A DNA stretch of 64,000 bases from the NCBI RefSeq assembly GCF_006345805.1, contig NC_043006.1:71672001-71736000 (forward strand), given 5' to 3'. A model generated the notes under the pieces. That model worked only from the letters and a program-made list of their open reading frames with translations, ran no database searches and was not told the DNA's origin. Below are positions 1-36,800 of this stretch, piece after piece. A program made the translations under genes and the position numbers. This DNA comes from Octopus sinensis (Eukaryota). Each line of letters begins with the position of its first letter. The first letter of the stretch is position 1.

Positions 1-818
1 GGAAGAAACGGGTGAGGGTTGGTGACAGGAAGAGCATCTGACCTCAGAGATCCTGCATTGACAGCTTAGAAAAGATGATATTGATTCTTTTGAGGTGGGT
101 TTCACAGTGTCTAGACACTGTTTGCCAGTTCAACATGATTGAATTCCAGTTGACTTCATCTTCGAGGTTAAGGACGTACTTTAGTCACAGAATGATAACT
201 GTGATTAACAAATTGGTGCATTCTCGAAGGGGAGATAATCCATGACCCTGATGAGACCTGCACTAGTTAGTTTTGAATGTGAGTTTGGAAGTGTGAGAGA
301 TATCATATGTAATCCATGGCACATCATAGACATATATAGGCAACATACAATAATAACATGGTTGATTTACATCAACTTTTTACACTGGGACAAGTCATTG
401 CAGCTCTCCTGGATGGGTTAGATCATATCTTGTAAGTTTCGTTTTTGACAAGTTTTTGTTTTAGAAGGGCATCTTTATGCCTAGATGCCCTTCTAAAACA
501 AAAACTTTACAAAGTGTACCGGGTGCATTTTCTCATATTACCAGCACTAGAGAGGAAAGAAGCAAGAGTGGATAATGGCAAGGGGTGAGTGTAACTTTCT
601 TTCACACAGCAACTTGTGCCCATTTAATATTTCAATATAATGAAATAAGGCAAAATAGATTTTTAAATATTATTAATCAGGAATGGAGTTTGAACTGTTG
701 ATCTGGGTCAAATGCTTGCAAGCAACTAAAGGCAACCACTAATCTGTGTTCAGTAATTTGGGATTAACCCAAAAGAGGTTTCAGCTTTCTTAGTTGAGGG
801 TCAGTATTTCTTTTAGCC

Positions 819-1368
819 ATTGGGTTGTCCGGAAAGTTCGTACTGATTTTTAGTAGCTTACCTTTCAACTTAGAACATGGTTGAGTCCATAAAATATGAT
901 TTGACTTCACCTCCATTTAGAGCACAGTTTAAGCTATCTTTACATGGAAGAAGGTTTATGTTCCTATAACCTGTTTTAATTCTGTAACCCTTTAAAATGG
1001 AAGATAAGAAAGTTCATTTTCGGCACTTGATGCTTTGGGAACCAGACAAAAATTGCTGCAGCTCAGCTGGCATGTGTTATCCCACCCTCCATATTCACCA
1101 GATATTGCTCCTTCAGATTTCCACTTATTCGGGTCTCTTAATGGTAAAAATCTCAATTCCTTGGATGACGTAAAAAGATACCTTGATGAATTCTTTGCCA
1201 TGAAACCACCTCAATTCTGGGGAGAGGGTATGTTCAAGTCAAAGGAAAGATGGAGATTATTGTGCAACAAAATGGCTCATATTTGGTTGATTAAAAATGT
1301 AATGGCAAGTATTTATTGACCTTTTCTTTTCCTTTAAAAATCGGCACAAACTTTCCGGACAACCCAAT
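819..1368 (+). mobile_element. Mariner-family non-autonomous deletion derivative
   Basis: TIRs ATTGGGTTGTCCGGAAAGTT / AACTTTCCGGACAACCCAAT(A); transposase remnant HPPYSPDIAPSDFHLF. Confidence 0.9.
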
Positions 1369-1470
1369 ACTTTTTGAGAGGCAATAAAACAAAAATAGAA
1401 GTCAATTCCATCAAATACTGAAACAGTCCTATAAAAAACAATAAAAAATAAATTCAAACTCATTCCTCAC

Positions 1471-1538
1471 CTTATCATCTTCAACCACACAGGTAATCTG
1501 TAGTTTTTTAATGCCATAGCCAACTGGAACAAATTTAG
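1471..1538 (-). CDS. EEF1B2: EF1-beta coding exon 5 (68 nt)
   Basis: [23 protein letters not shown]; ttccag acceptor, GTGAGG donor. Confidence 0.95.
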
Positions 1539-1672
1539 CTGGAAGCAAAAAAAAAAACATGAGCATGAAAGCATGGAAAGCGGACGTTAAACGATGATGA
1601 TGTTTGAAATCTAACATACACAATCTCCATAATTCCCTTCAAAATGTGGTACTATTCAGTGTATATATATAT

Positions 1673-1710
<38 letters not shown>

Positions 1711-2829
1711 CAATACTATATAGCAGGGTACTATTATTTGTAACAAGGATAAAATGATCGTTGCTAGGGCCATGGAGTGAGTGGCTCCCATGCCAGTGAC
1801 ACGTGAAAACACCATTCAAGCATGATCGTTGCCTTACCGGCACATGAAAACAACATTCAAGCGTGGTCGTTGCCAGTGCAGGTATCATGTAAAAACATTT
1901 CTTGAGCGTGGTCATTGCCAGAACCGCCTGACTGGCCCTCATGCCGGTGGTACGTAAAAAGCACCCACTACACTCTCGGAGTGGATGGCATTAGGAAGGG
2001 CATCCAGCTGTAGAAACTTTGCCAGATCAGATTGGCACCTGGTGCAGCCTCTGGCTCACCAGTCCTCAGTCAAACAACAATGAACGATATGGTGTCATTC
2101 ATTATCTGGGTAACCATACCGATATTTTACAGTAAGTACAGAACTGTTAATTACATGGGTACAAACAGTGATATTCCAATATAAAGTGTGATATTTAGTG
2201 TAGATATACACAGTAATATCCTACAATATATATATCATCATCATCATCATCATTTAACGTCCGTTTTCCGTGCTAGCACGGGTTGGACGGTTTTGACCGG
2301 GGTCTAGGGAGCCAGGGGCTGCCCCAGGCTCCAGTCTGGTCTGGCAGTGTTTCTACAGCTGGATGCCCTTCCTAACGCCAACCACTCCGCGAGTGTAGTG
2401 GGTGCTTTTTACGTGCCACCTGCACAGGTGCCAGAGGGGTCTGGCATCGGCCACGGTCAGTTGGTGCTTTTTATGTGCCACCTGCACAGAAGCCAGTCGG
2501 GGCGGTGCTGGCACCGGCCACGTTCGGATGGTGCTTTTTATGTGGGGGGAGGGTGCAGAAATATAGGGGAGCACCAGTGGGGAGGGTGTGTTCGAGAAAC
2601 GATGACAGGTTCTAGACAAGTAGAACGTAGGATATCACGAGAGGGGTAATGCATGGTGAAATAGCATATTGAAGAGGGGGGTTCGAAGAGTAGACCCTAT
2701 AATGGTGGTGGGAGAAGCGACATCCGGTATAGATGGAGCAAAATATAGAGATACCGGTATTGGTGGTGGGGGTGGGCAAGGGCGGGTGCACCGGAATATG
2801 CGAAGGTTGAACTTGACGGGCTATATATA

Positions 2830-2861
<32 letters not shown>

Positions 2862-5800
2862 CATACATACATACATATTGTATGATATTACTGTAGAGCT
2901 ATTCAGTGATATCCAATGTTATGCACAGCACCATGCATTGTCTATTTATGGAATCACTCAAAAAAAAAAAAAAAAAAAGAGAGAGAGAAAAACATCATGC
3001 TATAAGCTCTTTATATGTAAAGGCTGTCCCCAATGAGACTCACCAAACCTTAAATATCTACATATTCCAGTAGATTGCACACTGCAAACCCCCATCCTGT
3101 AACAATACAGAGGAAGCTACTTACAAGCACCCCACAGTAGACCATCACAGCTAACACTTCGCACACATTCTTCTAACTTGGACATGTCAGTCTCATCGTC
3201 CCATGGCTTTACATCCAAAATAAGGTTACTCTTGGCAATAATAGCAGGCTCTGAGTGAGAGAAAGAAAACATGAATTAGCAAAATACAGTGCAGATCAAA
3301 AACTGGAGGTCAGGACACACAACATATTGAAGTCACTAACATACATATACTATACAAAAAAAATCCCATAACTATTACTTTGTTATCAGGGTAACAAGTA
3401 GCAAGACTTTATAACAGCCTTCCATCCTCCAGGAAATTCATTTTGGTCAACTCATCCAAGTAAGAGACATAATTAAAGTGAAAATGGCAAGACTAAATAT
3501 TAAAACTGGACTTCACGATCAGCATAATATCTGCTCCTTCTACTCCACTTATTGACACAAAAACAATTTTCACATCCTTCCTTCATCTTGTCCATTCACC
3601 ACCCCCACCTATCCACCATGGTTTGGATCACTCAGAGTTCTTTGCTATATGGTACATATATATTCAACAACAGAAAATTCAGTCAAATGGCTTATGGAAT
3701 TGAATTGCATTTCTACCAACGTCTTTACAGCATGGACAGAGTTCCACATTTTATTAGGCTTCGGGCAATAAAGAAATTGTTTTGCAATGGAAGTAAAGAA
3801 TTTTTCCACAATGTATTGGTTCTTGTAAAGTTTTTAATCTCCTTAAATGGTTTGCAAAGTTCATGTCCTTTCTGTTACATTATTTTATCTTTTCCAACCA
3901 TAACTACTACACAAAAGAAAAATACATTTTAGTTGAACAGGTGCAAAATTAGCAGATAGTTTATGATATCCCTTTACAAAATAAAAGCATCTTTAATTTT
4001 TTACTTGTTTGTGACACTGGATTGCAGTCATGCTGGGGCACAGCTTTGAAGGGCTTGAGGCAAAGTAACCTCAGTACATATTTTTAAGCTTGGTACCCAT
4101 TCTTTCAGTCTCTTACGCTAAACTACTAAACAGGGACATAAACAAACCAACACCAATCGTTAAGCAGGGAGTGGGGGGTGAACGAACACAAAGACACACA
4201 TATACACACACAACATGCTTCTTTTAGTTTCCATCTACCAACTCCACTCACAAGGCTTTGGTTGTCCTAGGCTTATAGAAGACACACATTCAAGATGCCA
4301 CACACTGGAACTGAACCCAGAACATGATAGGGGAGCAAACTTCTTGCCACAGTCATGTCTGCCCCATATTTATTTTTAAAATGTAAAATATATATAAAGT
4401 ATATACAGGAGGCTTCTTTCTATCACATATTTCACATGTATGTGCACCATATCATTATCATACTTTTAGCATCTGCATTTCCATGCCTGCATAGGTCAGA
4501 TGGAATTTGCAGAGGCAGACACACACACACAGGTGTGGCTATGTGGTAAGAAGCTTGCTTCCCAACTACATGGCTTCAGGTTCAGTTCCACTACACAGAA
4601 CCTTGGGCAAGTGTCTTCTATCGGCCTGAGGCAACCAAAGCCTAGTGAGTGGATTTGGTAGTCAGAAATTAAATGAATTTTAGCGCTCACACACGTTTGC
4701 ATTAACAATCTAGTAGCCCAACTCAGTCAATGTTGTTGACTTAAAGCTACAGTTTTTTTCCTCCATGGTAACTGCCACAAACATATTTTAAGTAACCTAA
4801 ATTTGCTTATGCCTAAGCACTGCTTGGTGCTCATACTGCTGAGCACGTGCACGCACACACACAAACAGTGTCTTTCATGTTCAATATATGAAAGCATGTC
4901 TGGTCAGAGGAAATATTACCTTACTTCAAAACCCGTGTGAATTGGTAACAGGAAGGGCATTAGGTCATAGGAAATTTGCTTCCAAAAACCCCATCTGACC
5001 CATGCAAGCATGGAAAAATGCACATTAAAACGATGATGCATGTATAAACCAAAATTATGCAGATATTTTGAGATTTATTTTATAATCAAGAATTTGGCAT
5101 ATTTTTAATTAGTCATTAGGGAAACAGTTGTAAATCCTAAAATAATAGAGAATATCAAAATTAGGAAAACGAAACAATTAGAAGACTATAACCTGAGGAC
5201 AGCATCACGTTAATTTATGAGGCAGAAAAATAATCAACTCACTTTTGCTCTTCTTTAAATTATATTCTTCAATTCGCTTCTGGTGTTCCTTTTTCCTTTC
5301 CTCGTCCTCCTCATCATCATCAGAACCAAAGAGATCAATGTCATCATCATCATTATCACTGTCATCAGCTGGTTTAGACTTTGTAGCAGTTGTTCCAGTG
5401 CCATAGGAGTCTAGACTCTTCTTGACTCCAGGGAATCTGACAATGAATATCAAACATCCACAAATAACAACAGTATCTTTTGCCAGACATCACAATGGAA
5501 TGGTCAGCTCAACAGTATGGCATATCCAATCACTAAGGATCAACATTTCAATACCTATCAATGAGTTCAGTGATTTGGGACCTTCCCCACCACTACCACC
5601 ACTGCTATAATAAAGGTATTCAGGTGTAAAAATCAAACCAAATCAATACTTTGATCTAAATGATAAGGAAGTATTTCTAACAGTCACAGTAAACAATCTT
5701 TACAACACTGAAACCATTCTCAGAATTATATTTAAGAATACCTTTTTTCGATAGAATTTGAAGGATGTTGGTGGAAATTTTAACAGGCCAAAAGAGTGTC

Positions 5801-6409
5801 TGAATTCACTGCAAGTTTTACCATCTTGAGTCCACCTTGACCAGCTCTGCCATGGCTAAATCAACAGATGTATAGGAATAAAAATAACAGTAGAGAGAGT
5901 ACATGTCCAGACTGGCACACTGCACCTCATGTGGTTAATTATCTGGTGTACAAAAATAATTGCAACCAGTTCAAACTTTTAAACTACATCACTTCTGACC
6001 TTGGCACAGGATAAAGAGCAGTTTTTTTTAACCCCAGATAGGAAACATACCCTAAATAGTTACAACAGAGTGAACTCATCTCTGGTTTGTCTAAGAAGGC
6101 AGCAACTTTAAATAATAACAGACTCAGACTGTGACAATCCATCTAACCCATAACAGCTTGGAAAGTAGATGTAAAATCATGATGATGATGGAATTTGGTA
6201 AAACAAAATAAGAGACTGCAGATAATAAAATGATACTGGAAGGAGTATTAGACATCAGTAGGTCCAGTTTGCAACCGAGAAGTGTTATAGGCCTATCTCA
6301 AGGCTTAAAACATATTTATCATTTGTGATGGGAATACACTATTCAGGAACTGCTATGCCATCTTCTGAAATCTATGATTAGTTTCTTTTGTTTAAGATTG
6401 GTAATGTTT

Positions 6410-6440
<31 letters not shown>

Positions 6441-9067
6441 TACAGCCACTCATATATTAATTGATATTGATTATAATGTAATCTTGCAGCCTGTTGCATC
6501 ATGTGCCATGCCCGTTATGAAAGGAATGAAGGTGAAAACAAACTCTCCCGTTGCCAAAAAGGCTCGGTAAGTTTTTACTTGGATTTCTTAAAACTTATTC
6601 ACTACCATAACTGGTTAAGGCAGTTGAAACCTCTCACTTGCAATAACATCTCATCTTTTACAAGACACTCTGTCTTCTCAAACACAGAGACTCAGTTTTC
6701 AGTAATATGACTTAGTAACAACAACAATAATAATAATAAGAGCACTCAGAGAGCGCAAACCTTTGCCAAGGCAACACCAACATCCTCTCAATGATTAGCC
6801 TGAGATGATTTCTAAATTGAGAATATCTGAAATAAACTAGTCTGCTCTCACAAACAAGAACATTAAAAAATAAACCTGACCACTCTCAAAAATTAAGTTA
6901 AAAAAAATGGAAAAATAATCCAGAATCCTTGTCCGGTACCTGATCGATCCCAATGGTAATCATGGAATGTAAAGGTGGCTGTAGTTTATTCTTATCGAAT
7001 ACAAGCCAAAGTTAGAAAATTCACCATGCAAAATAGTTACAGCCTAAAGGGAGATAATTGAGAAAGACTTGACAGTTAACATAAGATTGTAATCATGTAA
7101 AGTAAATATAACAAATAATCCAGAATCCTTGTCCAGTACTGAATTGATCCAAAAATCTAATCAGTTTGTACCATCCATGAGGCCAAACATCCCTGAAAGT
7201 TTCATCTGAATCCATTCAGTGGTTCTTGAGATATCTTGTCCAGGGACGAACAAGTACAACTGAAAACAATACCTCTGCTTTTCTAAGGCAGAGGTAATAA
7301 TCCTTTCTACTATAGGCACAAAGGCCAAAACTTTAGGAGAGGGGGCCCAGTTGATTACTTTGACCCTATGCCCCCAGTGCTCAACTAGTTCTTATTTTAT
7401 TGATCCTAAAAAGATGAAAAGCAAGGTCAAGCTTGGCGGAACTCAGAACATAAAGTGGAAGAAATGCTGCTAAGCATTTTATCTGAAACACAAACAATTC
7501 TGTCAATAATAACATTTTTTTTTTTTTTTTTGATTCAGAACAAAAAAACAAGGAAAATAGGTCTTACTTTGCAACTTGTGTCTTGAAAGATTTAATGTGC
7601 TCAAACCAGCGTTTGGCATGACAGTAATTTGCAGAGGGCGAAGTAGTAAGTCCACCAAAGACAACACTGTCGGCTTGAGATGGTTCATAGCTGGAACATA
7701 CCAAAACAGAAAGAAAAAAAAAAAAAAGGATTTACAATGAATTCAAAAGCATCACCCATCCATTTTCTCCCTCTATTCCTGGGTTACAGTCTTCAGGTAT
7801 CTCCTCTATAGGGGTCCTATCAGAACTATCACTATGCTTCCCTAGTCAAGATTATCTGTGTATTCAGTAGATTATCTGTTCAGTTCTATACTTAAGAGAT
7901 GAGACATTTATATTTGACGGATATTTATAAGCCCTAAAATTCACTCCATAACTGCCCACGGGCATATGTTGTAGTGGTTAAGAGCATGGGCTACTAACCC
8001 TACGATTCTGGGTTTGATTCCAGGCAGTGACCTGAAGAATAATAATAAATAATAATATCGAAAAATACCTTAGGAATGAGAACCCAGGTTCGAAATTTCC
8101 CCAAGACACCTGATGAAGGCTGGAGGGTATTATCAGCCGAAACGTTGTGTTAACAATAAGATGAGGACAAACATTCATCAAATGTAAATAATTTATATTA
8201 TCTGTTACCCAAGGTAATTTAATCTACATTCCAATCAATGTAAACGATGATGATGTACTGAATAGTACACACAAAAATTTCTCAATGTTTCATGTCCACT
8301 TTCCATTTTAGCAGGGACTGAATAGATTGCTATAAATTCTTTTGTTTCAGTTACTGGACTGCAACAATCATACTGGGGCATTTAAGAGTTTACCAAATTA
8401 AATTGACAAGTACCTCTGTTAAATCAGGTACTTATTCTATTAGTTTCTTTTTGCCAAACTGCTAAGTTATACGGATGCACACAAACCAACAGCTATTGTC
8501 AAGTGGCTGAAGTGCAACAACGACACACAAAAACACACTTCTCAAGTTTCCGTCCAGCAATTTCCCTCACAAGGCATTGGTTGGCCTGAGGCAATAGAAG
8601 GCATGGCCATGATGCAATGAAATGAGATATAACTGAAGACTTCGTGGTAACAAAGTGAATTCCATATACACAGTCACATACACACGCACTTTTGCATGAA
8701 TATGTAATGCTGGATAAACTTGTGTTCTGATTGATACAAGAATGTAGTAATATTTCAACTGTACATGTAACATGCAAAAACCACAATATTCAATGTTTAA
8801 AAAAATATTCTAAATGTATGAAGAAAACTGAAAAAGCAACAAATATTTGCACCATTCAGGCAACAAACCTCCAACAGAGGATTGTTTTGGGTAGTCATTG
8901 CTGGTGTGGGTTTTACAAGGTCAGAGTGCAAATACTACCACAATAATAATGATAAAAATATAATTAAAAATAAAAAACAAATGTTTGAGAAGGAACGAAG
9001 GAGACAACCATTCGCTTCAGGCTGCTTCTCAGAAGTTCTCAAGTTAATTTAGGAAGTTGATGGGTTG

Positions 9068-9098
<31 letters not shown>

Positions 9099-12000
9099 CA
9101 GCCATAGAAAGAACCTATGTTGTCTTTTGAAACTTCCATGATATTTCAATACATCACATGTCAGTCCTAATAAACTACAAATTGTCTTTAATAAAAGCTT
9201 ATGGTTATAGAAGACAAGACTGGAATAAAACATGATTCGTGATAGTTACCACACAATGCAATGAATCTACTACTAACAGCCACTCCACACAACATGTATT
9301 GACAGCCAATCCAAGATGCAATATTGACAGCCACACTACACAAGCACGGACAGCCACCACACAAACATGTAATGAAAGCTACACTGCAATCTATGCATGA
9401 CTCAACTATCACACAGCACACCCAAACTCTAGTGTATCCCAGATGGTGATCACAGGAATTACTGCCAAATGTTTGGCCAGCTGACTCTAAAGTCCTATTC
9501 AGAGTAGAGAGATTTTCCAAATTGTACAGGAATACAACAATATTTAAAACCCGACAAGTTTTTTTTTTTTAATGTTCTAAAACAAATAACTTAAGAAAGC
9601 TTAAAACCAACAAATGTTTGAGATTTAATGTAGAAAACAACCACTGAAAACAATGAGGTACACGCATCAATTTAGGAAATTGAAATTAAAAATGATAGGG
9701 TTAGAAAGGATCTATGCTATCTTTTGGAACTTCCATAATCTTTTAACCCTAATGCACTTAATCCAGTCATATCTGGCTCAAATGTTCTGTTTTAAGTTCA
9801 AATTGGTCAGAGTCAGCTTCTCACACCTAACTCTCCAATGTTATTCATGTAACACATGTTAGTCCCAATTAAGCAGAGACAGTTCTTTATAACAACTTAA
9901 ACACCAGAATGTGGTACAAGCCTTAGTAGTATTTTTAATATAAAAGTAGTAGTAGACATGTGCTGTAACTATGCATCATGACTCCATCATTTGTTGGATT
10001 TTCTATTTCTGCCAAATGACACCTTTGTACCACTCAGGCGACAAACCTCCAACACATAGGGCTGTTTTAGATAGTCGTTGCTAGTGTGGGTTTTACAAGG
10101 TCAGAGTGATAATGATAATGATGAAAATAATAAAAACTATAATTTTAATACACCATAAAAGAAGAAGCTTGAGTGATCACTTTATTATAAAGAACAGCCA
10201 TTCCTAACTTCAGTCCTAAAATGAAAAAAAAAGGACACTAGATAAGGTAATTCATGGATCTGGCTGAAAGCTGGGAGTTGAACACAATCATTACCTCTCA
10301 CATATACTGTAGCTCTAAATCAAAGTAATGATGAATTTTACTGATTGGTATCCAGGTTCCACTAAATAACATTTCAGAAAGTAAAAACAAACATCTTTAT
10401 CATCTATTGAACACAGCTATATCCAAATTTATCACCACAGAATATCCTCCACAGTTCCATTTGCACTCATACACACATATGTACACAGCCATTCAAGTAA
10501 ACCTACTTCACAGCTACACTACATAAACACTACTGCATCAGTCACACATACGTGGTGAACTACTTAACCATAAGATTGTACCATTGCTAAGTATTACGAT
10601 GTAAAAAAAAGAAAAAGTAGAAACTATATATAATAATCTTTCCTACTGAAGCTGGAGCAGGGTGGGGTAAGTCAATTGTAGAGCTGAAAAAGAGGTAATT
10701 TCTACTCTTCTCCTCTGGAAGCCATCTACTCGCAATACCAGAGGGCGCACACTCTCCTACCCTGATTTAATCTCCAGGGATACAGGCATCCAGCAACAGG
10801 ACCTCCGTAATGCCATGATGGACCGTTAAGTCTGGCGTAGCATGGTAAATTCCACTGTCTCGACCACGGTCGAACAATGATGATGAAGTCATTTACTTTG
10901 GCCCCACCCCCTGCCCTTAGTGCTCAACTACTAATTCTATTAACCATGAAAAGACGGAAGGAAAAGTCAACCTCAGCAGAATTTGAACCCAGAACAAAAA
11001 AAAAAATGTTAACAGCATTTCTTCCAGTCTTTAGGTATTGAAAACTACCACACATTATGAAAGCCACATAGCATACAGCAAAATGACCTGACTCTAGCAT
11101 ATACAAAGAAGTGGTCACAAGAATTATTGCCAAACATCTAACCAGCTGCTTTTGAGTCTTTTGTAGGAACATTTCCCAAATTGTACAGTAACACAATGTT
11201 TAAAACATTATTTTTTTTTAAATGTCTTAAAACAAATATCTTAAGAAAGCTTAAAAATCAACAAATGTTTGAGATTTAATGTAGAAGACAACCACTGAAA
11301 ACAGATTGCTCCCACGAGGTTCACACATTGATTTCGGAAGTTGAAATTAAAAAAGATAGACGTGGAAAAGATCTAGCTTTCTTTCGGAACTTCCATAATC
11401 TTTGAATCTAACAAATTAGTCCTAATTAATTACAGACTATTCTATATAAAAGCCTAAACACAAGAATATAGTACAAACCCCAGTTAGTAATGATTAATTT
11501 TATTGATTGTATCCAGGTTCTACTAAATGGCATTTCAGAAAGTTAGTAAAAATAGCCATTTATTTACTTAACACAATTATATCCAACTTTATTTCAACAG
11601 ATCATCTCCAGTTCAACTTGCAGTTTGGGCACCATATAAACACTGGTGCGTCATTTACACACAAGTATATTATATATATATATATGTGTGTGTGTCTATC
11701 TTTTAGAGTTAGCCCAAAAGACAAAGTTCATTGCAGCAGACATGCCATATTTGTCGTAAGAGAAGTAAGTTTTGTACTGGTCTAAAAAGGCATTTAAATA
11801 TCCACAAATGAGACAAATTTGGACAACTTGCATTACAATTACAATTAAGAGTCGACCCGGTGCGCGCACTCGCATTAGTTAGTCATGACTAGTCGATCCA
11901 TACTTCGTGTTCTATTTACTTTGTTTAAAAAAATTATTTATTTTGTGTTTTATTTACTTGGCTAGGTAGTAGTTGTAGGATCGACTAGTCACGACTAGCT

Positions 12001-13118
12001 AGCGCGGGACCATTCTTCGTTTTCATCGACCAAATTCATTCAGAAATATAAACGACACTTGCCCAAGAGGTCGGGGGCCGGGGGTGGCAAACGATATCGA
12101 CTGGACGGTCACATATAGATATACATTCGCATTTCCTTTTCTAGTAGCCTATTGAAACACAAGTAAAATTTTACATGAATCTTATGTTACATATGTATTT
12201 AGATTTAATAAGAACTACCGGGCATATTAATTTCTTTTATACTTTTTTTTTATGGTCTAAATATTTCATGATCTTTACTTTTCGACAGTATTTTATTCCT
12301 ATATTTTTATTTAATAAAAGCTCTCAGTAACTAACAATCGTACCGATCGAGCTTGACAGAAAGATATATAATGTGTATTCATAATATGTTCGCTTAAGTT
12401 ATACTAAGGACATAAAATGCATTCACATATGTTTTAGAACGTTTTGTGTATGCATGCAACATGGCCAAATGGGTTTAAAGCACAGATGGGCAACTTTTTC
12501 GGAGAAGCAGGCCGCAAGAGACAATCAGAAAAATCAGAAAAAAAGAAAGAAGTTCAAGCTAATTTTACAATTCGGCGTACCATTCAGAAAGTCCCGCAGA
12601 TTGTACATGACTGCTTTGGGAGATCATTTGACATAATTACAGATTTGTGCCTCCCCCTCCCACTCCGGCTTTGTTACCTGAAAAATACATTCTTTTACAA
12701 TGAAATTTGGTGAAGATAGGTTTCCGAGGGTGTAGGTGACGATTATGTTGATAACATTAAGAAAAATTGATGCGAAGTGAGAATGAATTTCGGATCATTT
12801 TTTCTCACCTCCCGACTTCATTTCTTTGTAACTCTTCAAAATGCATATTTTTTAAATATTTTGGTGAAATATATTTTCGCGAGTTAAATTACGTAATGTT
12901 TCAAACATAAATTTTAAAAAACATTAAAGTTAAGGAAATTAGTGATAACAAAGTTGAGGATGGGGATAAACGGCATTTAAATGTCGGTATGAACACGTGG
13001 ACACATAACGAGAGAGGAATATGGTAATAATGTCATACCCTTCGACGTAGCTGCGAGTAGACATATACTCGTTTAAAGCTTTCAAACCAGCATCTGTTTT
13101 CAGGTCTCCAAAACCCAT
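1471..13118 (-). CDS. EEF1B2: Elongation factor 1-beta, multi-exon, 3'-partial: join of 13118-13039, 7690-7568, 5436-5243, 3250-3125, 1538-1471; last exon not found in the window
   Basis: Spliced translation (197 codons): [34 protein letters not shown]...RWFEHIKS...[15 protein letters not shown]...[23 protein letters not shown]...[20 protein letters not shown]. All introns GT-AG with consistent phases. The MGFGDLK N-terminus identifies the beta rather than the delta subunit. Confidence 0.97.
1760..2075 (+). mobile_element. RTE-LINE 3'-tail / SINE-like copy
   Basis: GGAAGGGCATCCAGCTGTAGAAAC core shared with the LINE tail at 25686-26050. Confidence 0.75.
2236..2540 (-). mobile_element. RTE-LINE 3'-tail / SINE-like copy
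   Basis: (CAT)n-TTTAACGTCC...GGATGCCCTTCCTAACGCCAACC on plus. Confidence 0.8.
3125..3250 (-). CDS. EEF1B2: EF1-beta coding exon 4 (126 nt)
   Basis: [42 protein letters not shown]; ctcag acceptor, GTAAGT donor. Confidence 0.96.
4001..4364 (-). mobile_element. tRNA-derived octopus-type SINE (degenerate)
   Basis: Homology to the full copy at 18399-18804. Confidence 0.65.
5243..5436 (-). CDS. EEF1B2: EF1-beta coding exon 3 (194 nt, acidic region)
   Basis: [12 protein letters not shown]...[36 protein letters not shown]; tgtcag acceptor, GTGAGT donor. Confidence 0.96.
6490..6566 (+). pseudogene. NDUFS1: Duplicated NDUFS1 exon (orphan copy, I->V change) within a 643-bp duplicate at 6085-6727
   Basis: Near-identical to 32258-32334 with both splice sites retained; flanks match 31855-32495. 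Confidence 0.92.
6738..7300. mobile_element. Non-autonomous Helitron/Helentron-like element
   Basis: Terminal hairpin ACCTCTGC-N9-GCAGAGGT (7271-7295); internal direct repeat AATAATCCAGAATCCTTGTCC; no TSD seen. Confidence 0.5.
7568..7690 (-). CDS. EEF1B2: EF1-beta coding exon 2 (123 nt)
   Basis: ttccag acceptor; [40 protein letters not shown]; GTAAGA donor. Confidence 0.96.
7960..8192 (+). mobile_element. tRNA-derived SINE-like element with a minimal hammerhead ribozyme core
   Basis: A-box TGTTGTAGTGG, anticodon-like arm GGG-CTACTAA-CCC, B-box GGTTTGATTCC, (AAT)n linker, then the hammerhead motif at 8105-8151. Confidence 0.7.
8105..8151 (+). ncRNA. Minimal type I hammerhead ribozyme (Penelope-type)
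   Basis: GACAC-CUGAUGA-A-GGCUG..CAGCC-GAAA-CG-UU-GUGUU; stem I GACAC/GUGUU; palindromic ACGU helix III. Confidence 0.65.
8979..9140 (-). ncRNA. H/ACA snoRNA-like gene, copy 1 (diverged)
   Basis: Same basal stem, H box AAAUUA, UUGAGA/UCUCAA stem and ACAUUU; 29-nt poly(U) expansion disrupts the 5' pocket; different 3' pocket. Confidence 0.58.
9612..9737 (-). ncRNA. H/ACA snoRNA-like gene, copy 2 (probably degenerate)
   Basis: Paralog of 11263-11397; 5' pocket UCCAA/AUUUCA and ACAUUU retained, but H box AAAUUG and ~10-nt deletion in the 3' upper stem. Confidence 0.55.
10694..10890 (+). mobile_element. Non-LTR retrotransposon (RTE/L2-like) 3' end
   Basis: [42 protein letters not shown] followed by a TGA-repeat tail. 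Confidence 0.7.
11263..11397 (-). ncRNA. H/ACA snoRNA-like gene, copy 3 (apparently intact)
   Basis: 135 nt, sense to host intron; GGAAGU/ACUUCC stem, H box AAAUCA (11334-11329), second hairpin, ACA+UUU end; 5' pocket UCCGA / AUUUCA fits 18S UGAAAU-U-C-UUGGA. Confidence 0.72.
13039..13118 (-). CDS. EEF1B2: EF1-beta coding exon 1 (80 nt)
   Basis: ATG at 13118, [27 protein letters not shown], donor GG|GTATGA. Confidence 0.96.
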
Positions 13119-13340
13119 CTTGACGGAGATTTTTCAGTTAAAATAGAAGGAGCTCGCAGAAAACGTTCAGCTTCCAATGGCTATAAAATGGCGTAAAGAC
13201 CGGTGACTACTGAAATATTCCCGAATTTAAAACACGGACTGTATTTCTTTTTGTTTTTTTCTTATTGTTTCATAAATATATGTGTATGTATGTCTCTCTA
13301 TATATATATATATTATTCAGGCTTAATGCCAATGTAAGTT
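13119..13340. promoter_or_regulatory. Putative bidirectional promoter for EEF1B2 and NDUFS1
   Basis: CpG-retaining island; pyrimidine tract CTCCTTCT on minus (13152-13145, TOP/TCT-like); CCAAT 13174-13178; TATAAAA 13182-13188 overlapping YY1-like AAAATGGCG; GTAAGT donor at ~13334 on plus. Confidence 0.55.
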
Positions 13341-15312
13341 ATCAAGTATTCATGTGTGTTTGTGAATATCTATATATGTATGTAGTTAGAGAGGTGGGTG
13401 ATTTCGAGCGTTACGGAAATGGGGTGTTCGTGAAAGCCTTGCTGTAACACAAATCCTTGTAATGCGGAATTAATTTTTCCATTGATTTTTATGTTATAAA
13501 ATAAGATGTATTCCTTAGGATTTTTGCAGGTTAAAAAACGATACATGAATTTTATGCATTAAAATAACAATTTCTAAGCATACGCATATACATTAGGGAA
13601 TAAATAAAAATCGTAATAGGGTATGTACTCAAAAAAGATATTGACTTCTGAGGTAGGGTATAAGAGATTGAGGGACACTATGTTCTATCATATAGTTCAT
13701 CATCATCAACATTTACTTCAGGAATGCAGAATTTATCCAAAATTGTTTGATGTTTATAGCACATTATCTCTTTCTATAGGAACGAAGATAAATGGGTGAA
13801 AGAGTGTGGCGAAAGGAAGTCATATATGATTAGTTAACTGAATGATTATTGGATTCACTGGCATTTTGCTCCTTGTACTTCTGACTTAAATCATTAAAAC
13901 TCCACACTCTACACAAACACATTCCTTTGTATTGATATACAACATATGTAGCTACAGGCATTTTTATTGGGCTGATGGCAGTATTATTATTGCCAGTTGA
14001 TTATTAAAAAATAATAGGTTAGTAGTGGTGTTAGTGGTGATTGTATCAGTTTTGGTGTTCGTGTTGGTCATGGTACTGCTGGAGATGATGGGAATGTTGT
14101 TGGCAGTAGTGGTGATCATATTGATCTTGTAAATTTCATTGATTTAAAATTAAAAAATCATTTCATTCAACTTTTAAAAGACACTAGAGTAGATAGATAG
14201 CTGATCTTTGTTTCAAAAATATATGAACAAATACAAATATTTACAATGAAAAATTCTACCCCATTCTTTATAAGTGTTTGTAGTGGTGCATACACAGCAC
14301 TTGCATTAAAAGTGCATGCATGCACACACACGTGTGTGTGTGTGTTGTGATTATAGGTTTTTGAATTGTTATTTATACTTTAACCATAGCTAAAATGCTG
14401 AGAAATGAATTATCAGCTAAGAAAACATGTAGTATTTAAATTGCTAAGATTTTTTCAACGTAAGGCAAAGCTAGAGTGTATGTGCATGTGTGTGTGTATA
14501 AATGTAATGCACAATATATGGATTTATATAATCCAGTGGTCATCATGAAAAAGCTCCCTTTGTGGATCCAGCTACAAACCACATAGTAAACAAATACATA
14601 GTAGTGTAATGTAGAGTCCTATGCAGTTTAAAATACAGTAAATCCAATATGTGAAAGTTATTTCATAAGGAGTATATAGAATATAAAGGAAGTCAGAAGG
14701 TATGAAATGAATATATTTGTTTCACAAGTTGATATCCATAGGATGACAACTGTTTCTCAGCAAACATGCAAAAATAATTTATTTTAGTGTATAATAAATC
14801 ATTTTACAAATCTGCATTAATGTGTATGCTATAAATTGCATAGTATTATTGTACATTTTACAAACAAATGCAGATATAGAAAGCTGGCTCATCAGATCAA
14901 CAGAATATCATGGTTACATCAATTTTTGAACTCCAGTATGCACATACAAAAATACATCTTCAGATTTTTAATGTATGAAAGACAATAATATTATTGTCTT
15001 CCTTACATTAGAAAGTGTTGGTGGCTACTTAAGTATGCTGCAGTGATATTAGTATGGAGGGTTTCTTAAGCCAATGTTTTAATGTTCACAAGAGTATATA
15101 GGTTGTTTTAAAAGTTGTTGGTCATCATATTTGTCTATAGACAGGAAAAAAAACCCATAAATATTACCAATGTGCTAGTGAAATAAACCTCACCACCCAG
15201 CTACATTCTTTTGTGAACCTTTAAATACTAATCCCTTACAAGCTAACATACCAAGAAAACACCCCTAACTACAAAGGATAAAAACTGGACTGAAGTGTAG
15301 GATTTAACTTAC

Positions 15313-15700
15313 ACTCTTTTACTTGTTTCAGTCATTTGATTGCGACCATGCTGGAGCACCACCTTTAGTCGAGCAAATCGCCCCCAGGACTTATTCTTTC
15401 TAAGCCTAGTACTTAGTCTATCGGTCTCTTTTGCTGAACCGCTAAGTTATGGGGATGTAAACACACCAGCATCGGTTGTCAAGCAATGTTGGGGGGACAA
15501 ACATAGACACACACACACACATATATATACATATATATGATGGGCTTCTTTCAGTTTCCGTCTACCAAATCCACTCACAAGGCTTTAGTTGGCCTGAGGC
15601 TATAGTAGAAGACACTTGCCCAAGGTGCCAGGTAGTGGGACTGAACCTGGAACCATGTGGTTGGTAAGCAAGCTACTTACCACACAGCCACACCTGTACC
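15313..15700 (-). mobile_element. tRNA-derived SINE, near full length
   Basis: Reverse complement of the 18399-18804 family. Confidence 0.85.
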
Positions 15701-16823
15701 TACACATTCTCAAATTATAAAGTTAATATCTAAATACAACCAACAACAACCAAACTGTGTGACAGTGCTGTGACTAACAACATTACAACATTCTTTTGTG
15801 AAATCCTTTGACTTGAACATGACACACCTAAGCACACACAAAGCTATACATGCATGAATAAATTCTAACCATTAGCACTTACCCAAATTTAACCAATAAA
15901 AATTCTCCATACAATGTAACATACAGCATGATTATCATAATTATCATTCAACAGAATTCAAGTTACACTAGAAAATTTGAAATTAACAGAGACTATATAA
16001 TGCCAAGATGAACTTAAATGATTTCTAGTCTGATGATGGCTTATCTGGCTGAAACTTCAAAATCACTGTCAGTACTATGCTTATCAAAGAATAGTAAAGA
16101 TATACACTACCAAATATATTGACTAATCCCTCAACTTATTGGAAAATTGTTTTTATTATAATATAAAAACAAAAGATAATACACACACACACACATATAT
16201 AGACAGTCACATATATACACACACACATACACAAGCACATGTATATGTATATAGTTGAAATTTACAGAAAAACAAAAAACAAAGACAGATGTACAAATAA
16301 CAAGCAGGTGTATTAGTTTAATGCGAAAGTCTTTTATGTTTTGAGCCTATGCTCTTCAACAGAAAGGAATAAGAGAAAATAAACAGAGAGAGAAAAACTT
16401 GTGGATTTAGCGATCAAGCAGGGTGATGTACATACACATCATTAAACATATTTATGTATGTATGTTTGTATGTGTTTTATATATATATATATACTAGCAG
16501 AGATACCCAACCTTGCTCTGGATTAAAATGGCATAGTTTTTTATTGTTTCACTTGTTTCAGTCAGGTGACTGTAGCCATGCTGGAGCATTGCCATTGGTC
16601 GAACAAATTGACCACAGGATTTATTCTTTGCATGCCTAGTACCTATTCTATTAGTGTTTTTTTGCCAAGCAGCTAAGTTATGGGAACTTAAACACAGCAA
16701 CATCGGTTGTCAAACAATGTTGGGGCTACAAACACAGACACACAAATATACACATATACATGACAATCTTCTTTCAGTTTCCATGTATGAAATCCACTCA
16801 CAAGGCTTTGGTTGGCTTGAGGC

Positions 16824-17392: not shown

Positions 17393-19041
17393 AAAAACAG
17401 AACAATGAGAACAAAACAGTAAAAACAAACGGTGAGGGTTGTTAAGCCAAAATGATTAGAAAATTATTCTGAACGTTTAGGAAGACAAGCTTATGAAGGA
17501 GACAGTATAAGCACATTTAGTCTTTACGAAGGTTGTGGATAGAAAGGTAGATTCTCTTTCGTCACGTGTCAGTGATGAGAGAGTCAAGGAGGAGGAGTGA
17601 AAGAGAGGGAATGGTGAAGAGAAGAGGAGAAGAATAGGGAAGGGTGGGAGAGAAAACCAGAAAGGATGAAGGACAAGAGGGGGAGAGAGATAGAAGAGTG
17701 CACATCGTAATTATTAAGATAAAACTTACTTAGAAAAGGATGCGTGGCGTTTGATCATATAATATAAATATATGCATATATACATACATCTATGTACATA
17801 CCTACATATATATGAGATAATAACAATTCATAGTAAATAATTCTGAAAAAAGTTTTTGTGTGTTCTCAGAGAATATTACCCTCAGTGGCGCTAGTGTTGG
17901 TATATCCATAAATAAGTCACTAACCAAAATAAGTGGATCTATCATTTAGGAAAATAGTATTTATTGTTTAAGTGTTGTACTGGATAAATTGCAAAAATAA
18001 CTCAAAAACAGAACAATGAGAACAAAACAGTAAAAACAAACGGTGAGGGTTGTTAAGCCAAAATGATTAGAAAATTATTCTGAACGTTTAGGAAGACAAG
18101 CTTATGAAGGAGACAGTATAAGCACATTTAGTCTTTACGAAGGTTGTGGATAGAAAGGTAGATTCTCTTTCGTCACGTGTCAGTGATGAGAGAGTCGAGG
18201 AGGAGGAGTGAAAGAGAGGGAATGGTGAAGAGAAGAGGAGAAGAATAGGGAAGGGTGGGAGAGAAAACCAGAAAGGATGAAGGACAAGAGGGGGAGAGAG
18301 ATAGACAGAGAAGAGATAGAAGAGTGCACATCGTAATTATTAAGATAAAACTTACTTAGAAAAGGATGCGTGGCGTTTGATCATATAATATAAATATAGG
18401 CGCAGGAGTGGCTGTGTGGTAAGTAGCTTGCTAACCAACCTCATGGTTCCGGGTTCAGTCCCACTGCGTGGCATCTTGGGCAAGTGTCTTCTGCTATAGC
18501 CCCGGGCCGACCAATGCCTTGTGAGTGGATTTGGTAGACGGAAACTGAAAGAAGCCTGTCGTATATATATATATATATATATGTGCGTGTTTGTATGTCT
18601 GTGTTTGTGCCCCTAGCATTGCTTGACAACCGATGCTGGTGTGTTTACGTCCCTGTCACTTAGCGGTTCGGCAAAAGAGACCGATAGAATAAGTACTGGG
18701 CTTACAAAGAATAAGTACCGGGGTCGATTTGCTCGACTAAAGGCGGTGCTCCAGCATGGCCGCAGTCAAATGACTGAAACAAGTAAAAGAGTAAAGAGTA
18801 AGAGATATGCATATATACATACATCTATGTACATACCTACATATATATGAGATAATAACAATTCATAGTAAATAATTCTGAAAAAAGTTTTTGTGTGTTC
18901 TCAGAGAATATTACCCTCAGTGGCGCTAGTGTTGGTATATCCATAAATAAGTCACTAACCAAAATAAGTGGATCTATCATTTAGGAAAATAGTATTTATT
19001 GTTTAAGTGTTGTACTGGATAAATTGCAAAAATAACTCAAA
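17393..19041. repeat. 611-bp direct tandem duplication, second copy interrupted by a SINE
   Basis: 17393-18003 matches 18004-19041 once the insert is removed, apart from one substitution and a 14-bp indel seen. Confidence 0.92.
18399..18804 (+). mobile_element. Full-length young tRNA-derived SINE (406 bp)
   Basis: A/B boxes, internal (TA)n, (GAGTAAA) tail, ATA duplication; empty site present in the first tandem copy. Confidence 0.9.
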
Positions 19042-33800: not shown

Positions 33801-36800
33801 TCTGTCTTGGATTATATCTGTCTTTCTGTCATAAATACTATTGTTTGATATATATATATATTCATACACACATACATATTAATGTGTGTGTGTGTGAAGG
33901 CGCATGGCTTAGTGGTTAAGGTGTTGTAGGTTCGATTCCCAGACTGAGCGTTGCATTGTGTTCTTGAGCAAAGCACTTCATTTTACAGTGTTCTGCGATC
34001 ATTTCGGCATCTGACATGTGGCATCTGTTGTACCTGTACAAATAATGTTGATCTGATGGAGGGTGTGAGCTTATGTGTACACAAACATGTGATCACTATA
34101 GACAAATCATCTCTCTGGTTGTTCGGCAAGAAATTGTCAAATCCTCATACATTGCCTAACAACAAGAGAGTCCATCATTTATATATATATACTAGCAGTA
34201 TCACCCGGCGTTGCTCGGGTTTGTAAGGGAAATAACTATATAAGCATTTTTAGAAAGTTACTTCCCTTATAGATGCCAATTCGGGCTTTCTTAGCCCTTT
34301 CTGTTTTGGTGTCTTCAAGCCATGAAGTCGTTGTTCTAAAAGAACGCTGGTCTCCTTGACAACGCTTTACGACGTTGATTTCCTTACACTCCCTTCCCCA
34401 CAGCTTCACGAGGGAGGGAAGAAGGGGGAGAAGCAAACAGGTGCAGGTGTGACCATGGACGCCAACTCCGCCGCCATCGACACACGAAAAATTATGCATT
34501 AAAATGGAATAAAAAATGATGTTAAATTATTTTTAAAATCGTAGACTCATCGTAGACGGGCTCGATATGAATCACGACTATAAGATACCCGAATTTGGTT
34601 AAACTGCACCGCAAAATGTGGGAGTAGTTAGGAATCTAAATCGAAGGGGACAGACACTCACACAACTACAGTTTTATATATATAGATATTAGGTATATAT
34701 ACAGACATATGCATGCATGCATGTGGTTTAGAAGCTTGCTTCCCAACCATATAGTCTCAGGTTCAGCTCCACTGTGTAGCACTTTGGGCAAGTGTCTTCA
34801 ACTACAGCTTTGGACAACCAAAGCCTTGTGAGTGAATCTGCTTGATGGAAACTGAAAGAAGCCTGCTGTGTGTGTTTGTGCCTGTCCTTATCTCAGTAGC
34901 ACATGGGTGTATTTGATGTGTGTATTTGGTGTGCAAAGTTGTTGTGTGTTAGTATGAATGCTTACAGTCTGTGCTGCCCTGAAAAAGTGCCGAATTATGG
35001 ATGATGATGTTTGTTTGATATTTTGTGGCTCTTTTACTTCTGTAGCTGAGTAAAATAAAAACTGTCATACTTAAAAAAAAAAAAAGAGTCAGGTTAGGAT
35101 AAACAATAGAAAGGACACATGGCTATAAGAACAGTGCTTCAGTTGTTTTTGTCTAACCCATGCAAGCACGAAAAACAGACATAAAATTTCTTTCTTTCTA
35201 CTATCAGTGCAAGGCCTGAAATTTTTGAGGAAGGAACTAGTCTATTTCATCAACCCCAGTTCTTGACTGGTAGTTATTTTACCGACCCCGAAAGAATGAA
35301 AGGCAAATTTGACCTCAGCAGGATTTGAACTCAAAATGTAAAGCTGAAGAAATGCTGCAAAGCATTTTGATTGACTCTGCTAGATAATAAGATGAATGAA
35401 CAAAATATTATATAGATTGTGTATCATTAATAAGGAATAATAAGGTTGTGAACTGGCAGGATCATTACTGCACTAGATAAAATGCTTAGAAGCATTTTGA
35501 GTTCAAATCCTGCTCAGGGTGATTTTTGCTTTTCATCCTTTCAGGGTAGATAAAATAAGTATCACTTGAACACTGGGGACTTACCCATCTCCTGAAATTG
35601 CTAGCCTTTTGCCAAAATTAGAAAGTGAAAAGTTATTAATAGTAGGAGTGAACAGGCGTAGGAGTGGCTGTGTGGTAAGTAGCTTGCTTATCAACCACAT
35701 GGTTCTGGGTTCAATCCCACTGCGTAGAATCATAGGCAAGTGTTTTCTGTTATAGCCTCGGGCTGACCAAAGCCTTGTGAGTGGATTTGGTAGACGGAAA
35801 CTGAAAGAAGCCCGTTGTATATGTGTGTGTGTATGTTTGTATGTCTGTGTTTGTCCCTCCTACCATTGCTTGACAACCAATGCTGGTGTGTTTACATCGC
35901 CATAACTTAGCAGTTCAGCAAAATAAATCGATAGAATAAGTACTAGGCTTACAAAGAATAAGTCCTGTGGTCGATTTGTTCAACTAAAGGTGGTGCTCCA
36001 ACACGGCTACAGTTAAATGACTGAAACAAGTAAAATAGTAAAAGAGGGAACTACCAGATATTGAAACCTTGATAGCAATATGAAGCATGTCTCTTTCCTT
36101 GTTTTTCAGGATCAGTCTATGGTGTTTGGGAGTGATCGCAGTAGATTTACAGACATTAACTTTACAGGCAAAAGGTCAGTAGTGACAATTTGATATATCC
36201 CTTTATTAGTATAATGATACATCTTTCTTCTGTTGAATATTAAGTCTGTTATTTTTGAGGTTTTGTTGCTGTTACTGTAATTGTTTTGTGGTTTTGTTGC
36301 AGGGCTGTTGAAGACAAGAATGTTGGTCCCCTTATAAAAACCATTATGACACGTTGCATTCACTGCACTAGATGCATACGGTAAGGTTATGGTCTTGTCA
36401 GATGTCTTTATTTATTCATGTATTTGTTTGTTGTTGTTTTGTCCCAGGTCAGCTCTTATCCACCAGGTCTTGTGACTACAATTTACAGAAACCCCTGCAT
36501 TACAGAAACATTGCATTCATGAAATCTTTGGGGTAACATGGAATTCCTTAATTGTAACACATAATGTACATTCCTATTATCTTCCATTTCATTGGCTTTC
36601 ATTTAACATCAAAGTCAACGGGAAAATTTACTCCATGTTATGAAATGGTTTTCGTGAGTGCAATGCCTCTGTAACACAAGGAATGCGTTGTTTTTCAGAC
36701 ATAGTATACCTGTCAAAACTATGTGATAGAAGCAGTATATGAAAGATTAGACAGGTGTGTGTGTATAGGCACAGGCATAGCTGTGTGTTAAGAAGCTTGC

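Follow-up and report, generated by a model that had tools for sequence, protein, structure and literature searches.

Pseudouridine (Ψ) at position 40 of U6 small nuclear RNA (snRNA) is directed by the box H/ACA RNAs HBI-100 (SCARNA3) and ACA12 in human and by pugU6-40 in Drosophila, the last verified experimentally on a U6 33–46 substrate (PMC3884663). Several H/ACA RNAs within one intron are already known in Drosophila (PMC3089462), and SNORA14 guides position 966 of 18S ribosomal RNA (rRNA) through its 3' domain in all vertebrates (PMC6984369). Here we describe three homologous H/ACA-type units, U1, U2 and U3, in the first coding intron of the gene for elongation factor 1-beta (EEF1B) of Octopus sinensis. 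They lie in a stretch of 64,000 nucleotides (nt) of contig NC_043006.1 (assembly GCF_006345805.1, positions 71,672,001–71,736,000, forward strand; hereafter the window, whose numbering is used throughout unless another locus is named). U1 is best explained, from its pocket, fold and orthologs, as the RNA that in cephalopods corresponds to human SCARNA3/HBI-100 and Drosophila PsiU6-40. We assign a probability of about 0.7 to the reading that U1 is a genuine intron-encoded U6-Ψ40 H/ACA guide and that U2 and U3 are decaying, non-functional copies of it. The reading is built on the homology, architecture, guide complementarity, covariation and differential conservation of U1.

U1 (8979–9140), U2 (9612–9737) and U3 (11263–11397) are all on the minus strand, which is the sense strand of EEF1B. 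The first-pass annotation of this stretch had placed three homologous, sense-strand, intronic H/ACA-type units at exactly these positions, and this was borne out. It had also assigned a hairpin-hinge-hairpin-ACA organization to each unit, which holds for U1 and fails for U2 and U3, where only two and four of the seven base pairs (bp) of the 3' basal stem form; the full H/ACA layout is present in U1 only. The predicted fold of U1 comprises a 5' hairpin, a hinge with the H box, a 3' hairpin and a tail with the ACA, and both basal stems are completely paired (7/7). The elements of U1 are as follows.

8979..9140, minus strand: U1, complete box H/ACA RNA of ~160 nt, candidate U6-Ψ40 guide (fold, SCARNA3 match, orthologs, covariation, conservation)
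9131..9137, minus strand: 5' hairpin basal stem, 5' strand GGAAGUU; partner AACUUCC at 9052–9058; 7/7 in three Octopus species
9068..9096, minus strand: 29-nt U run on the 3' side of the internal loop of the 5' hairpin
9045..9050, minus strand: H box AAAUUA, which fits ANANNA; same in three Octopus species
9036..9042, minus strand: 3' hairpin basal stem, 5' strand UUGAGAA; partner UUCUCAA at 8985–8991; 7/7
9030..9034, minus strand: 3' pocket 5' strand UUCUG; predicted partner U6 42–46 (CAGAG, one G·U)
9010..9019, minus strand: 3' hairpin apical loop UGAAGCGAAU, at the position of UGAG in Sepia and Mytilus
8992..8998, minus strand: 3' pocket 3' strand UCGUUCC, the exact complement of U6 33–39 (GGAACGA)
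8979..8984, minus strand: ACA box and UUU tail, read from the sequence, with the 3' end as set in the first-pass annotation

The last entry also qualifies the 'ACA+3 nt' layout attributed earlier to all units, which is a product of the unit ends that were chosen.

The U6 sequence used here is conserved among metazoans. Against it, the 3' pocket of U1 forms 7+5 bp (33–39 and 42–46, one G·U), with U40 and A41 unpaired. U40 is placed 15 nt from the ACA, and 14 nt separate the first base of UCGUUCC from the ACA. The target was derived from the pocket sequence independently of the SCARNA3 match described below. A home-made guide–target scan, run over four complete rRNA operons and five snRNAs, proved too permissive to discriminate, with chance matches of 10–14 bp for every pocket tested. 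Because this crude scan yields equal matches by chance, the case for the U6 target is carried by guide conservation and family homology rather than by complementarity alone. One match from the 5' pocket of U1, a perfect 7+7 pairing with a variable region in the 18S of one protist, was set aside, the region being missing from metazoan-like 18S.

No Rfam family matched anywhere in the 64-kb window at gathering thresholds. With relaxed thresholds, SCARNA3 (RF00565, gathering threshold 47) aligned with U1 over its full length (8980–9140, minus strand; 22.7 bits, E = 0.21 in 2.8 kb), and the O. bimaculoides ortholog of U1 likewise gave a full-length match (23.3 bits). The same check thus returned SCARNA3 rather than SNORA14, the RNA with which the units had been linked earlier. 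PsiU6-40 (RF02669, threshold 48) gave no match to octopus U1 at E ≤ 10. Counting the orthologs described below, three separate loci match SCARNA3 or PsiU6-40, the two Rfam families of U6-Ψ40 guides.

U1 resembles SCARNA3 in its two-hairpin H/ACA layout, its intronic location and its alignment to the whole model, and the two share a GGAAG...CUUCC-type basal stem and a CCUA-H-box hinge. Both carry UCGUUCC in the 3' pocket with a CUG-containing 5' strand; in octopus 7 nt then precede the ACA, and in the Rfam consensus UCGUUCC likewise begins 14 nt before the ACA. They differ in score (22.7–28.5 bits for the cephalopod sequences against a gathering score of 47), in the 5' strand of the pocket (5 bp with one G·U in octopus, UCUCUG in the vertebrate consensus), in the 29-nt U run of the octopus 5' hairpin, in the apical loop (UGAAG in octopus versus UGAG) and in the host, since the vertebrate host gene is not EEF1B2. 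With PsiU6-40/pugU6-40, U1 shares the (in octopus, predicted) target and the character of an intron-encoded H/ACA RNA; Cajal-body localisation and WDR79 binding have been demonstrated for the fly RNA, whereas octopus U1 is known from sequence alone.

The EEF1B loci of O. bimaculoides, Argonauta hians, Sepia (Acanthosepion) pharaonis, O. vulgaris and assembly GCA_006345805.1 were compared with that of the window, followed by those of oyster, abalone and mussel. Assembly GCA_006345805.1, of the O. sinensis/vulgaris group, is 100% identical to the window over positions 1–16000. EEF1B intron 1 of S. pharaonis contains a sense-strand H/ACA RNA (locus L003, 13701–13829) with a two-hairpin fold, the H box ACAGUA, a 7-bp 3' basal stem, UCGUUCC followed by 7 nt and ACA, and an apical UGAG; it matches SCARNA3 with 28.5 bits (E = 0.0015). 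A covariance model that combines octopus U1 with the Sepia RNA (model R1) finds two copies in EEF1B of the mussel Mytilus galloprovincialis (48.6 and 53.6 bits, E ~1e-7), one of which also matches Rfam PsiU6-40 with 31.5 bits.

L011:5163–5296 and L011:7151–7290: mussel U6-Ψ40-type H/ACA copies in EEF1B introns 2 and 4, with UGAG in their 3' apical loops

Octopus, Sepia and both Mytilus copies share an identical 9-nt guide, CUUCGUUCC, while the stems that flank it change, and the alignment shows the CUG opposite the guide to be invariant in all orthologs. In the five-sequence alignment of octopus, Sepia and Mytilus, nine stem pairs have changed in both partners, among them six of the seven in the 3' basal stem. 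On four of five covariation measures all 500 column shuffles stayed below the observed values, and slid controls were far lower. The apical loop of the 3' hairpin reads UGAAG in octopus U1 and UGAG, the CAB-box consensus, in the aligned Sepia sequence and both Mytilus copies. The distribution indicates that EEF1B has carried a U1-type RNA since the common ancestor of cephalopods and bivalves or longer.

A second Sepia match (L003:10817–10961, 22 bits) showed no fold signal and was dismissed as an artefact of poly-U. For squid EEF1B loci, a second protein search found no further cephalopod genomes in the collection searched. In the last EEF1B intron of the oyster Magallana gigas there are three near-identical H/ACA units that resemble SNORA33 (40–42 bits against a threshold of 74).

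L009:6256–6392, 7064–7201 and 8092–8228: oyster SNORA33-like units, an H/ACA cargo different from U1

Within the genus, intron 1 of O. sinensis is 91.6% identical to that of O. bimaculoides at aligned sites (8.4% mismatch) and differs from that of O. vulgaris by 0.85% substitutions. Against this background U1 reaches 97.5% identity in the comparison of O. sinensis with O. bimaculoides, with 4 mismatches in 160 positions (p = 0.0024; p = 4e-6 with gaps), and direct reading of the alignment places none of the four in the basal stems, the H box, the ACA or the strands of the U6 guide. U3 is 93.3% identical in the same comparison (p = 0.30; p = 0.003 with gap columns included). Neither U1 nor U3 shows a single change from O. 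sinensis to O. vulgaris; in the same pair of species U2 has 4 substitutions in 126 positions, above the 0.85% background, and no U2 ortholog was found in O. bimaculoides. Since other parts of the intron are equally conserved, the cross-class evidence outweighs the within-genus comparison.

Two further observations concern U1 and its surroundings. The U run in the 5' hairpin is exactly 29 nt long in O. sinensis, O. vulgaris and O. bimaculoides and is missing in the Sepia and Mytilus orthologs; another T run of the EEF1B intron varies among the Octopus species (14, 16 and <12). A mononucleotide run of constant length is unusual, and the U run could be a further peculiarity of U1 with a function of its own. 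A block at 8727–8838 (minus strand), ~150 nt downstream of U1, has the same base at 99 of 100 positions in O. sinensis and O. bimaculoides. It neither folds stably (z = +1.7) nor matches an Rfam family, and may be a regulatory or splicing element.

U2 and U3 are 80% identical to each other, and U1 is ~71% identical to either. Covariance-model scores for the three units in the window are 195, 61 and 41 bits, the next match reaching 17 bits, so that the window holds these three copies only, all in one EEF1B intron. By self-BLAST, the block containing U2 is 77% identical to a block containing U3 (11111–11406), and self-comparison of the intron reveals more duplicated flanks around the two. Because flanking sequence was duplicated along with the units, the copies arose by tandem DNA duplication and not by retroposition; the small copy number in the window together with the co-duplicated flanks also rules out a transposable-element origin.

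9446..9746, no strand assigned: segmental duplication block with U2, 77% identical to 11111–11406
9612..9737, minus strand: U2, degenerate paralog with intact 5' hairpin; 3' basal stem 2/7, no ANANNA
9724–9728 (UCCAA) and 9681–9686 (AUUUCA), minus strand: U2 pocket complementary to the 18S-966 site
11263..11397, minus strand: U3, paralog of doubtful function with intact 5' hairpin; 3' basal stem 4/7, U6 guide lost
11384–11388 (UCCGA) and 11342–11347 (AUUUCA), minus strand: U3 pocket
11329–11334, minus strand: U3 H box AAAUCA, canonical in O. sinensis and O. vulgaris

All three units retain the 5' hairpin (basal stem GGAAGUU/AACUUCC with 6–7 of 7 pairs, upper stem with 8 of 9), including one compensatory pair, C-G in U1 and U-A in U2, and all three contain an ACA. 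The earlier statement that stems are maintained despite sequence change is correct to this extent and does not extend to the 3' basal stem, which has 7/7 pairs in U1, 4/7 in U3 and 2/7 in U2. The U6 guide UCGUUCC is replaced by ACAUUAA in both U2 and U3. An ANANNA H box is absent from U2 (AAAUUG) and from U3 of O. bimaculoides, where the first A of the box and one basal pair are gone. In the minimum-energy fold of U3 the ACA is buried in a stem. Fold z-scores of the units are modest (−0.8 to −2.3). From these features U2 is probably a pseudogene, and U2 and U3 together are most likely octopus-lineage tandem duplicates in decay and without function.

The first-pass annotation had assigned all three units to 18S Ψ966, the site of human SNORA14, by way of a shared 5' pocket (UCCRA / AUUUCA). 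The pocket is present in U2 and U3. In U1 the corresponding strands are UUUCAA and CCAUCA, and the 3' strand is not complementary to 18S. The attribution of Ψ966 to SNORA14 is itself correct (PMC6984369). The 18S segment UGAAAU[U]C-UUGGA occurs in more than 120 eukaryotic 18S contigs. In an 18S fragment anchored on Ψ1248, U966 falls exactly at the bracketed U, which agrees with the site named in the first-pass annotation. U2 and U3 match 18S by 6+5 bp around U966 (960–965 and 968–972, leaving U966 and C967 unpaired), at a distance of 14 nt from the H position; the pairing is entirely Watson-Crick in U2 and includes one G·U in U3. This 11-bp bipartite match to the same 18S site, at the right spacing to the H position, is the likeness to SNORA14. 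The differences are that the guide of SNORA14 is in the 3' domain and that of U2 and U3 would be in the 5' domain, that U1 lacks a guide for this site, that its carriers U2 and U3 look degenerate, and that sequence and model similarity are absent: no SNORA14 match was found in 8800–11600 at E ≤ 10, and membership of the units in SNORA14 (RF00397) is thereby ruled out. Nor does the aligned sequence of the Sepia and Mytilus orthologs contain this 18S guide. Orthologous EEF1B introns in other cephalopods had been named earlier as a place to look, and they yielded a U1 ortholog in Sepia, which lacks this guide, and none in Argonauta. The proposed 18S function therefore retains the complementarity of U2 and U3 in its favour and loses U1, the best-conserved unit, which is without the guide and whose pocket fits U6 instead.

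From the family membership of U1 we infer its expression, processing, assembly into a ribonucleoprotein and modification of U6. The RNA would be freed from spliced EEF1B intron 1 by debranching and exonucleolytic trimming and would join the H/ACA core proteins. Its 3' pocket would then pair with U6 on both sides of U40, UCGUUCC with 33–39 and UUCUG with 42–46, and U40, ~15 nt from the ACA, would be converted to pseudouridine. U2 and U3 would go back to a tandem duplication, within the octopus lineage, of DNA that included the RNA; both copies would then have shed the U6 guide and the 3' basal stem and, in part, the H box. Special processing of a polycistronic cluster would be needed only if U2 or U3 were expressed, so the endonucleolytic release that had been postulated for this intron is not required if U1 alone is functional. 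The intronic H/ACA clusters of Drosophila are alike in holding several units in one intron of a translation-related host; here one of three units looks functional, and the octopus intron may therefore not be a working cluster.

A different history, which we consider unlikely, would divide the labour among the copies: U1 would keep U6-Ψ40, and U3, perhaps with U2, would be expressed with a 5' hairpin that guides 18S Ψ966. A re-tooling of U3 and possibly U2 for this site after the octopus duplication, converging on SNORA14 while U1 stayed with U6, is likewise unlikely. In either case two or more H/ACA RNAs would have to be excised from a single intron, for which there are precedents in the multi-H/ACA introns of Drosophila (PMC3089462) and in the three SNORA33-like copies of the oyster EEF1B intron. 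The AUUUCA and UCC(A/G)A strands do pair on either side of U966 at the proper distance from the H position, the U2 match was the top-scoring all-Watson-Crick one in the four-operon scan, the stems of the 5' hairpin are kept in all copies, and U3 has a canonical H box in O. sinensis and O. vulgaris and no indels relative to O. bimaculoides. The same units, however, have 3' basal stems of 2–4 pairs in 7, an ACA buried in the minimum-energy fold of U3, and no H box in U2 or in O. bimaculoides U3; their substitution rate is neutral-like for U3 and above background for U2, which is missing altogether from O. bimaculoides. For the guide to pair, the upper stem would have to open at its weak A-U base, and bases between the guide helix and this stem would stay unpaired. 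Moreover, matches of 10–14 bp arise by chance for every pocket tested, so complementarity alone cannot carry the 18S claim, and the orthologs in Sepia and Mytilus are without this guide.

The same evidence bears more heavily on the proposal of the first-pass annotation, in which all three units would be functional guides of 18S Ψ966 through the shared 5' pocket, released endonucleolytically from one intron. The units are homologous, lie on the sense strand and have a common 5' hairpin; two of the three are complementary to 18S, and SNORA14 does guide 18S-966. Yet U1, which alone is complete and conserved across species, has CCAUCA in place of AUUUCA together with the 29-nt U run, nothing in the region matches SNORA14 at E ≤ 10, U2 and U3 are degenerate, and the guide that is conserved from octopus to cuttlefish and mussel is the U6 guide of the 3' hairpin. 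We regard this proposal as very improbable. Equally remote is the reading that no unit is functional and that tandemly duplicated intron sequence took on an H/ACA-like shape and its guide matches by chance. The lack of Rfam matches at gathering thresholds, the modest fold z-scores, the frequency of chance guide matches and the equal conservation of unstructured intron parts among Octopus species would all fit it. It leaves aside that a cephalopod model detects both copies in the mussel EEF1B introns with E ~1e-7, that nine stem pairs are compensatory with 0/500 shuffles reaching the observed values on four of five measures, that a 9-nt guide is invariant while the surrounding stems change, and that three separate loci match SCARNA3 or PsiU6-40.

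Several points weigh against the reading of U1 as a U6-Ψ40 guide with two decaying copies. Every Rfam match is under its gathering threshold (22.7–31.5 bits against 47–48). The U6 sequence behind the pairing is the general metazoan one and not octopus's own, and the match (7+5 bp, one G·U) is no better in the crude scan than some chance matches to rRNA operons. The 29-nt U run within the 5' hairpin of U1 is odd, and its apical loop is UGAAG, not the CAB-box UGAG. A U1 ortholog was not found in the EEF1B loci of Argonauta, abalone and oyster, where poly-U accounts for the best matches (14–18 bits). High conservation among Octopus species is seen in other parts of the intron as well, and the within-genus argument is weaker for it. 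Finally, U3 is without indels over 135 nt (p = 0.003 with gaps), which leaves room for weak constraint on this copy.

The host gene was located on the minus strand by tblastn and splice-site reading, with human EEF1B2 as the query. The spliced EEF1B protein and the database entry P0001 for Octopus EF-1-beta are 100% identical. The positions of its first two coding exons place the units within the first coding intron.

13118–~13038, minus strand: EEF1B exon with the ATG (tblastn and splice sites)
7690..13037, minus strand: host intron, first coding intron of EEF1B (tblastn, splice-site reading)
7689–7570, minus strand: next EEF1B exon (tblastn and splice sites)

A pyrimidine tract, CTCCTTCTATTTT, lies at 13140–13152 (minus strand), ~25 nt upstream of the EEF1B ATG, and is similar to the 5' terminal oligopyrimidine motif that typifies genes for translation factors and host genes for small nucleolar RNAs (snoRNAs). 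A repeated pair, 8846–8965 and 10024–10144 (~80% identical), lies on either side of units. Sequence at 8428–8600 has copies at ~15409, 16639, 18491–18696, 35751–35943, 45485 and 56313 and is probably an interspersed repeat.

Human EEF1B2 carries SNORD51 and SNORA41, and the main octopus RNA, U1, is a different cargo in the same host, as had been proposed. Weak C/D-like matches also occur in the intron. A match to snoZ196/R39/R59, the family of human U51, at 8126–8209 (minus strand; 27.7 bits against a threshold of 55) has a CUGA D box, a guide-like ACGUUUCGG and a degenerate C box; in O. bimaculoides only its 3' 58 nt align, and CUGA is changed to UUGA. It could be a relic of SNORD51 cargo, as in human EEF1B2, or a product of chance. 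The second, an snR60/Z15-like match at 9896–9999 (minus strand, 20.7 bits) with AUGAUGG and a GCAUAGUU element, has neither a CUGA D box nor a D' box, its 5' half is without a counterpart in O. bimaculoides, and it is probably non-functional. Neither of these candidates, U51-like or snR60-like, is conserved in O. bimaculoides, and both were rejected. Matches to snoZ159/U59 (27–30 bits) at 5268–5357 (minus strand) and L001:10051–10134 are false and arise from the GAT-repeat acidic stretch of EEF1B exon 3.

The candidate guide U1 adds one more, unexceptional representative to an established RNA family. With it, cephalopods and molluscs at large gain a concrete U6 Ψ40 guide candidate that is missed at Rfam thresholds. 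The intron as a whole offers a clean example of snoRNA birth and decay through tandem duplication, and a caution for sequence-only scans: the 18S target first proposed fits two degenerate copies only, and the conserved copy points elsewhere. For the host gene, the presence of this RNA inside EEF1B introns of both cephalopods and bivalves, unlike the cargo of human EEF1B2, points to a long-lived association between a snoRNA and its host.

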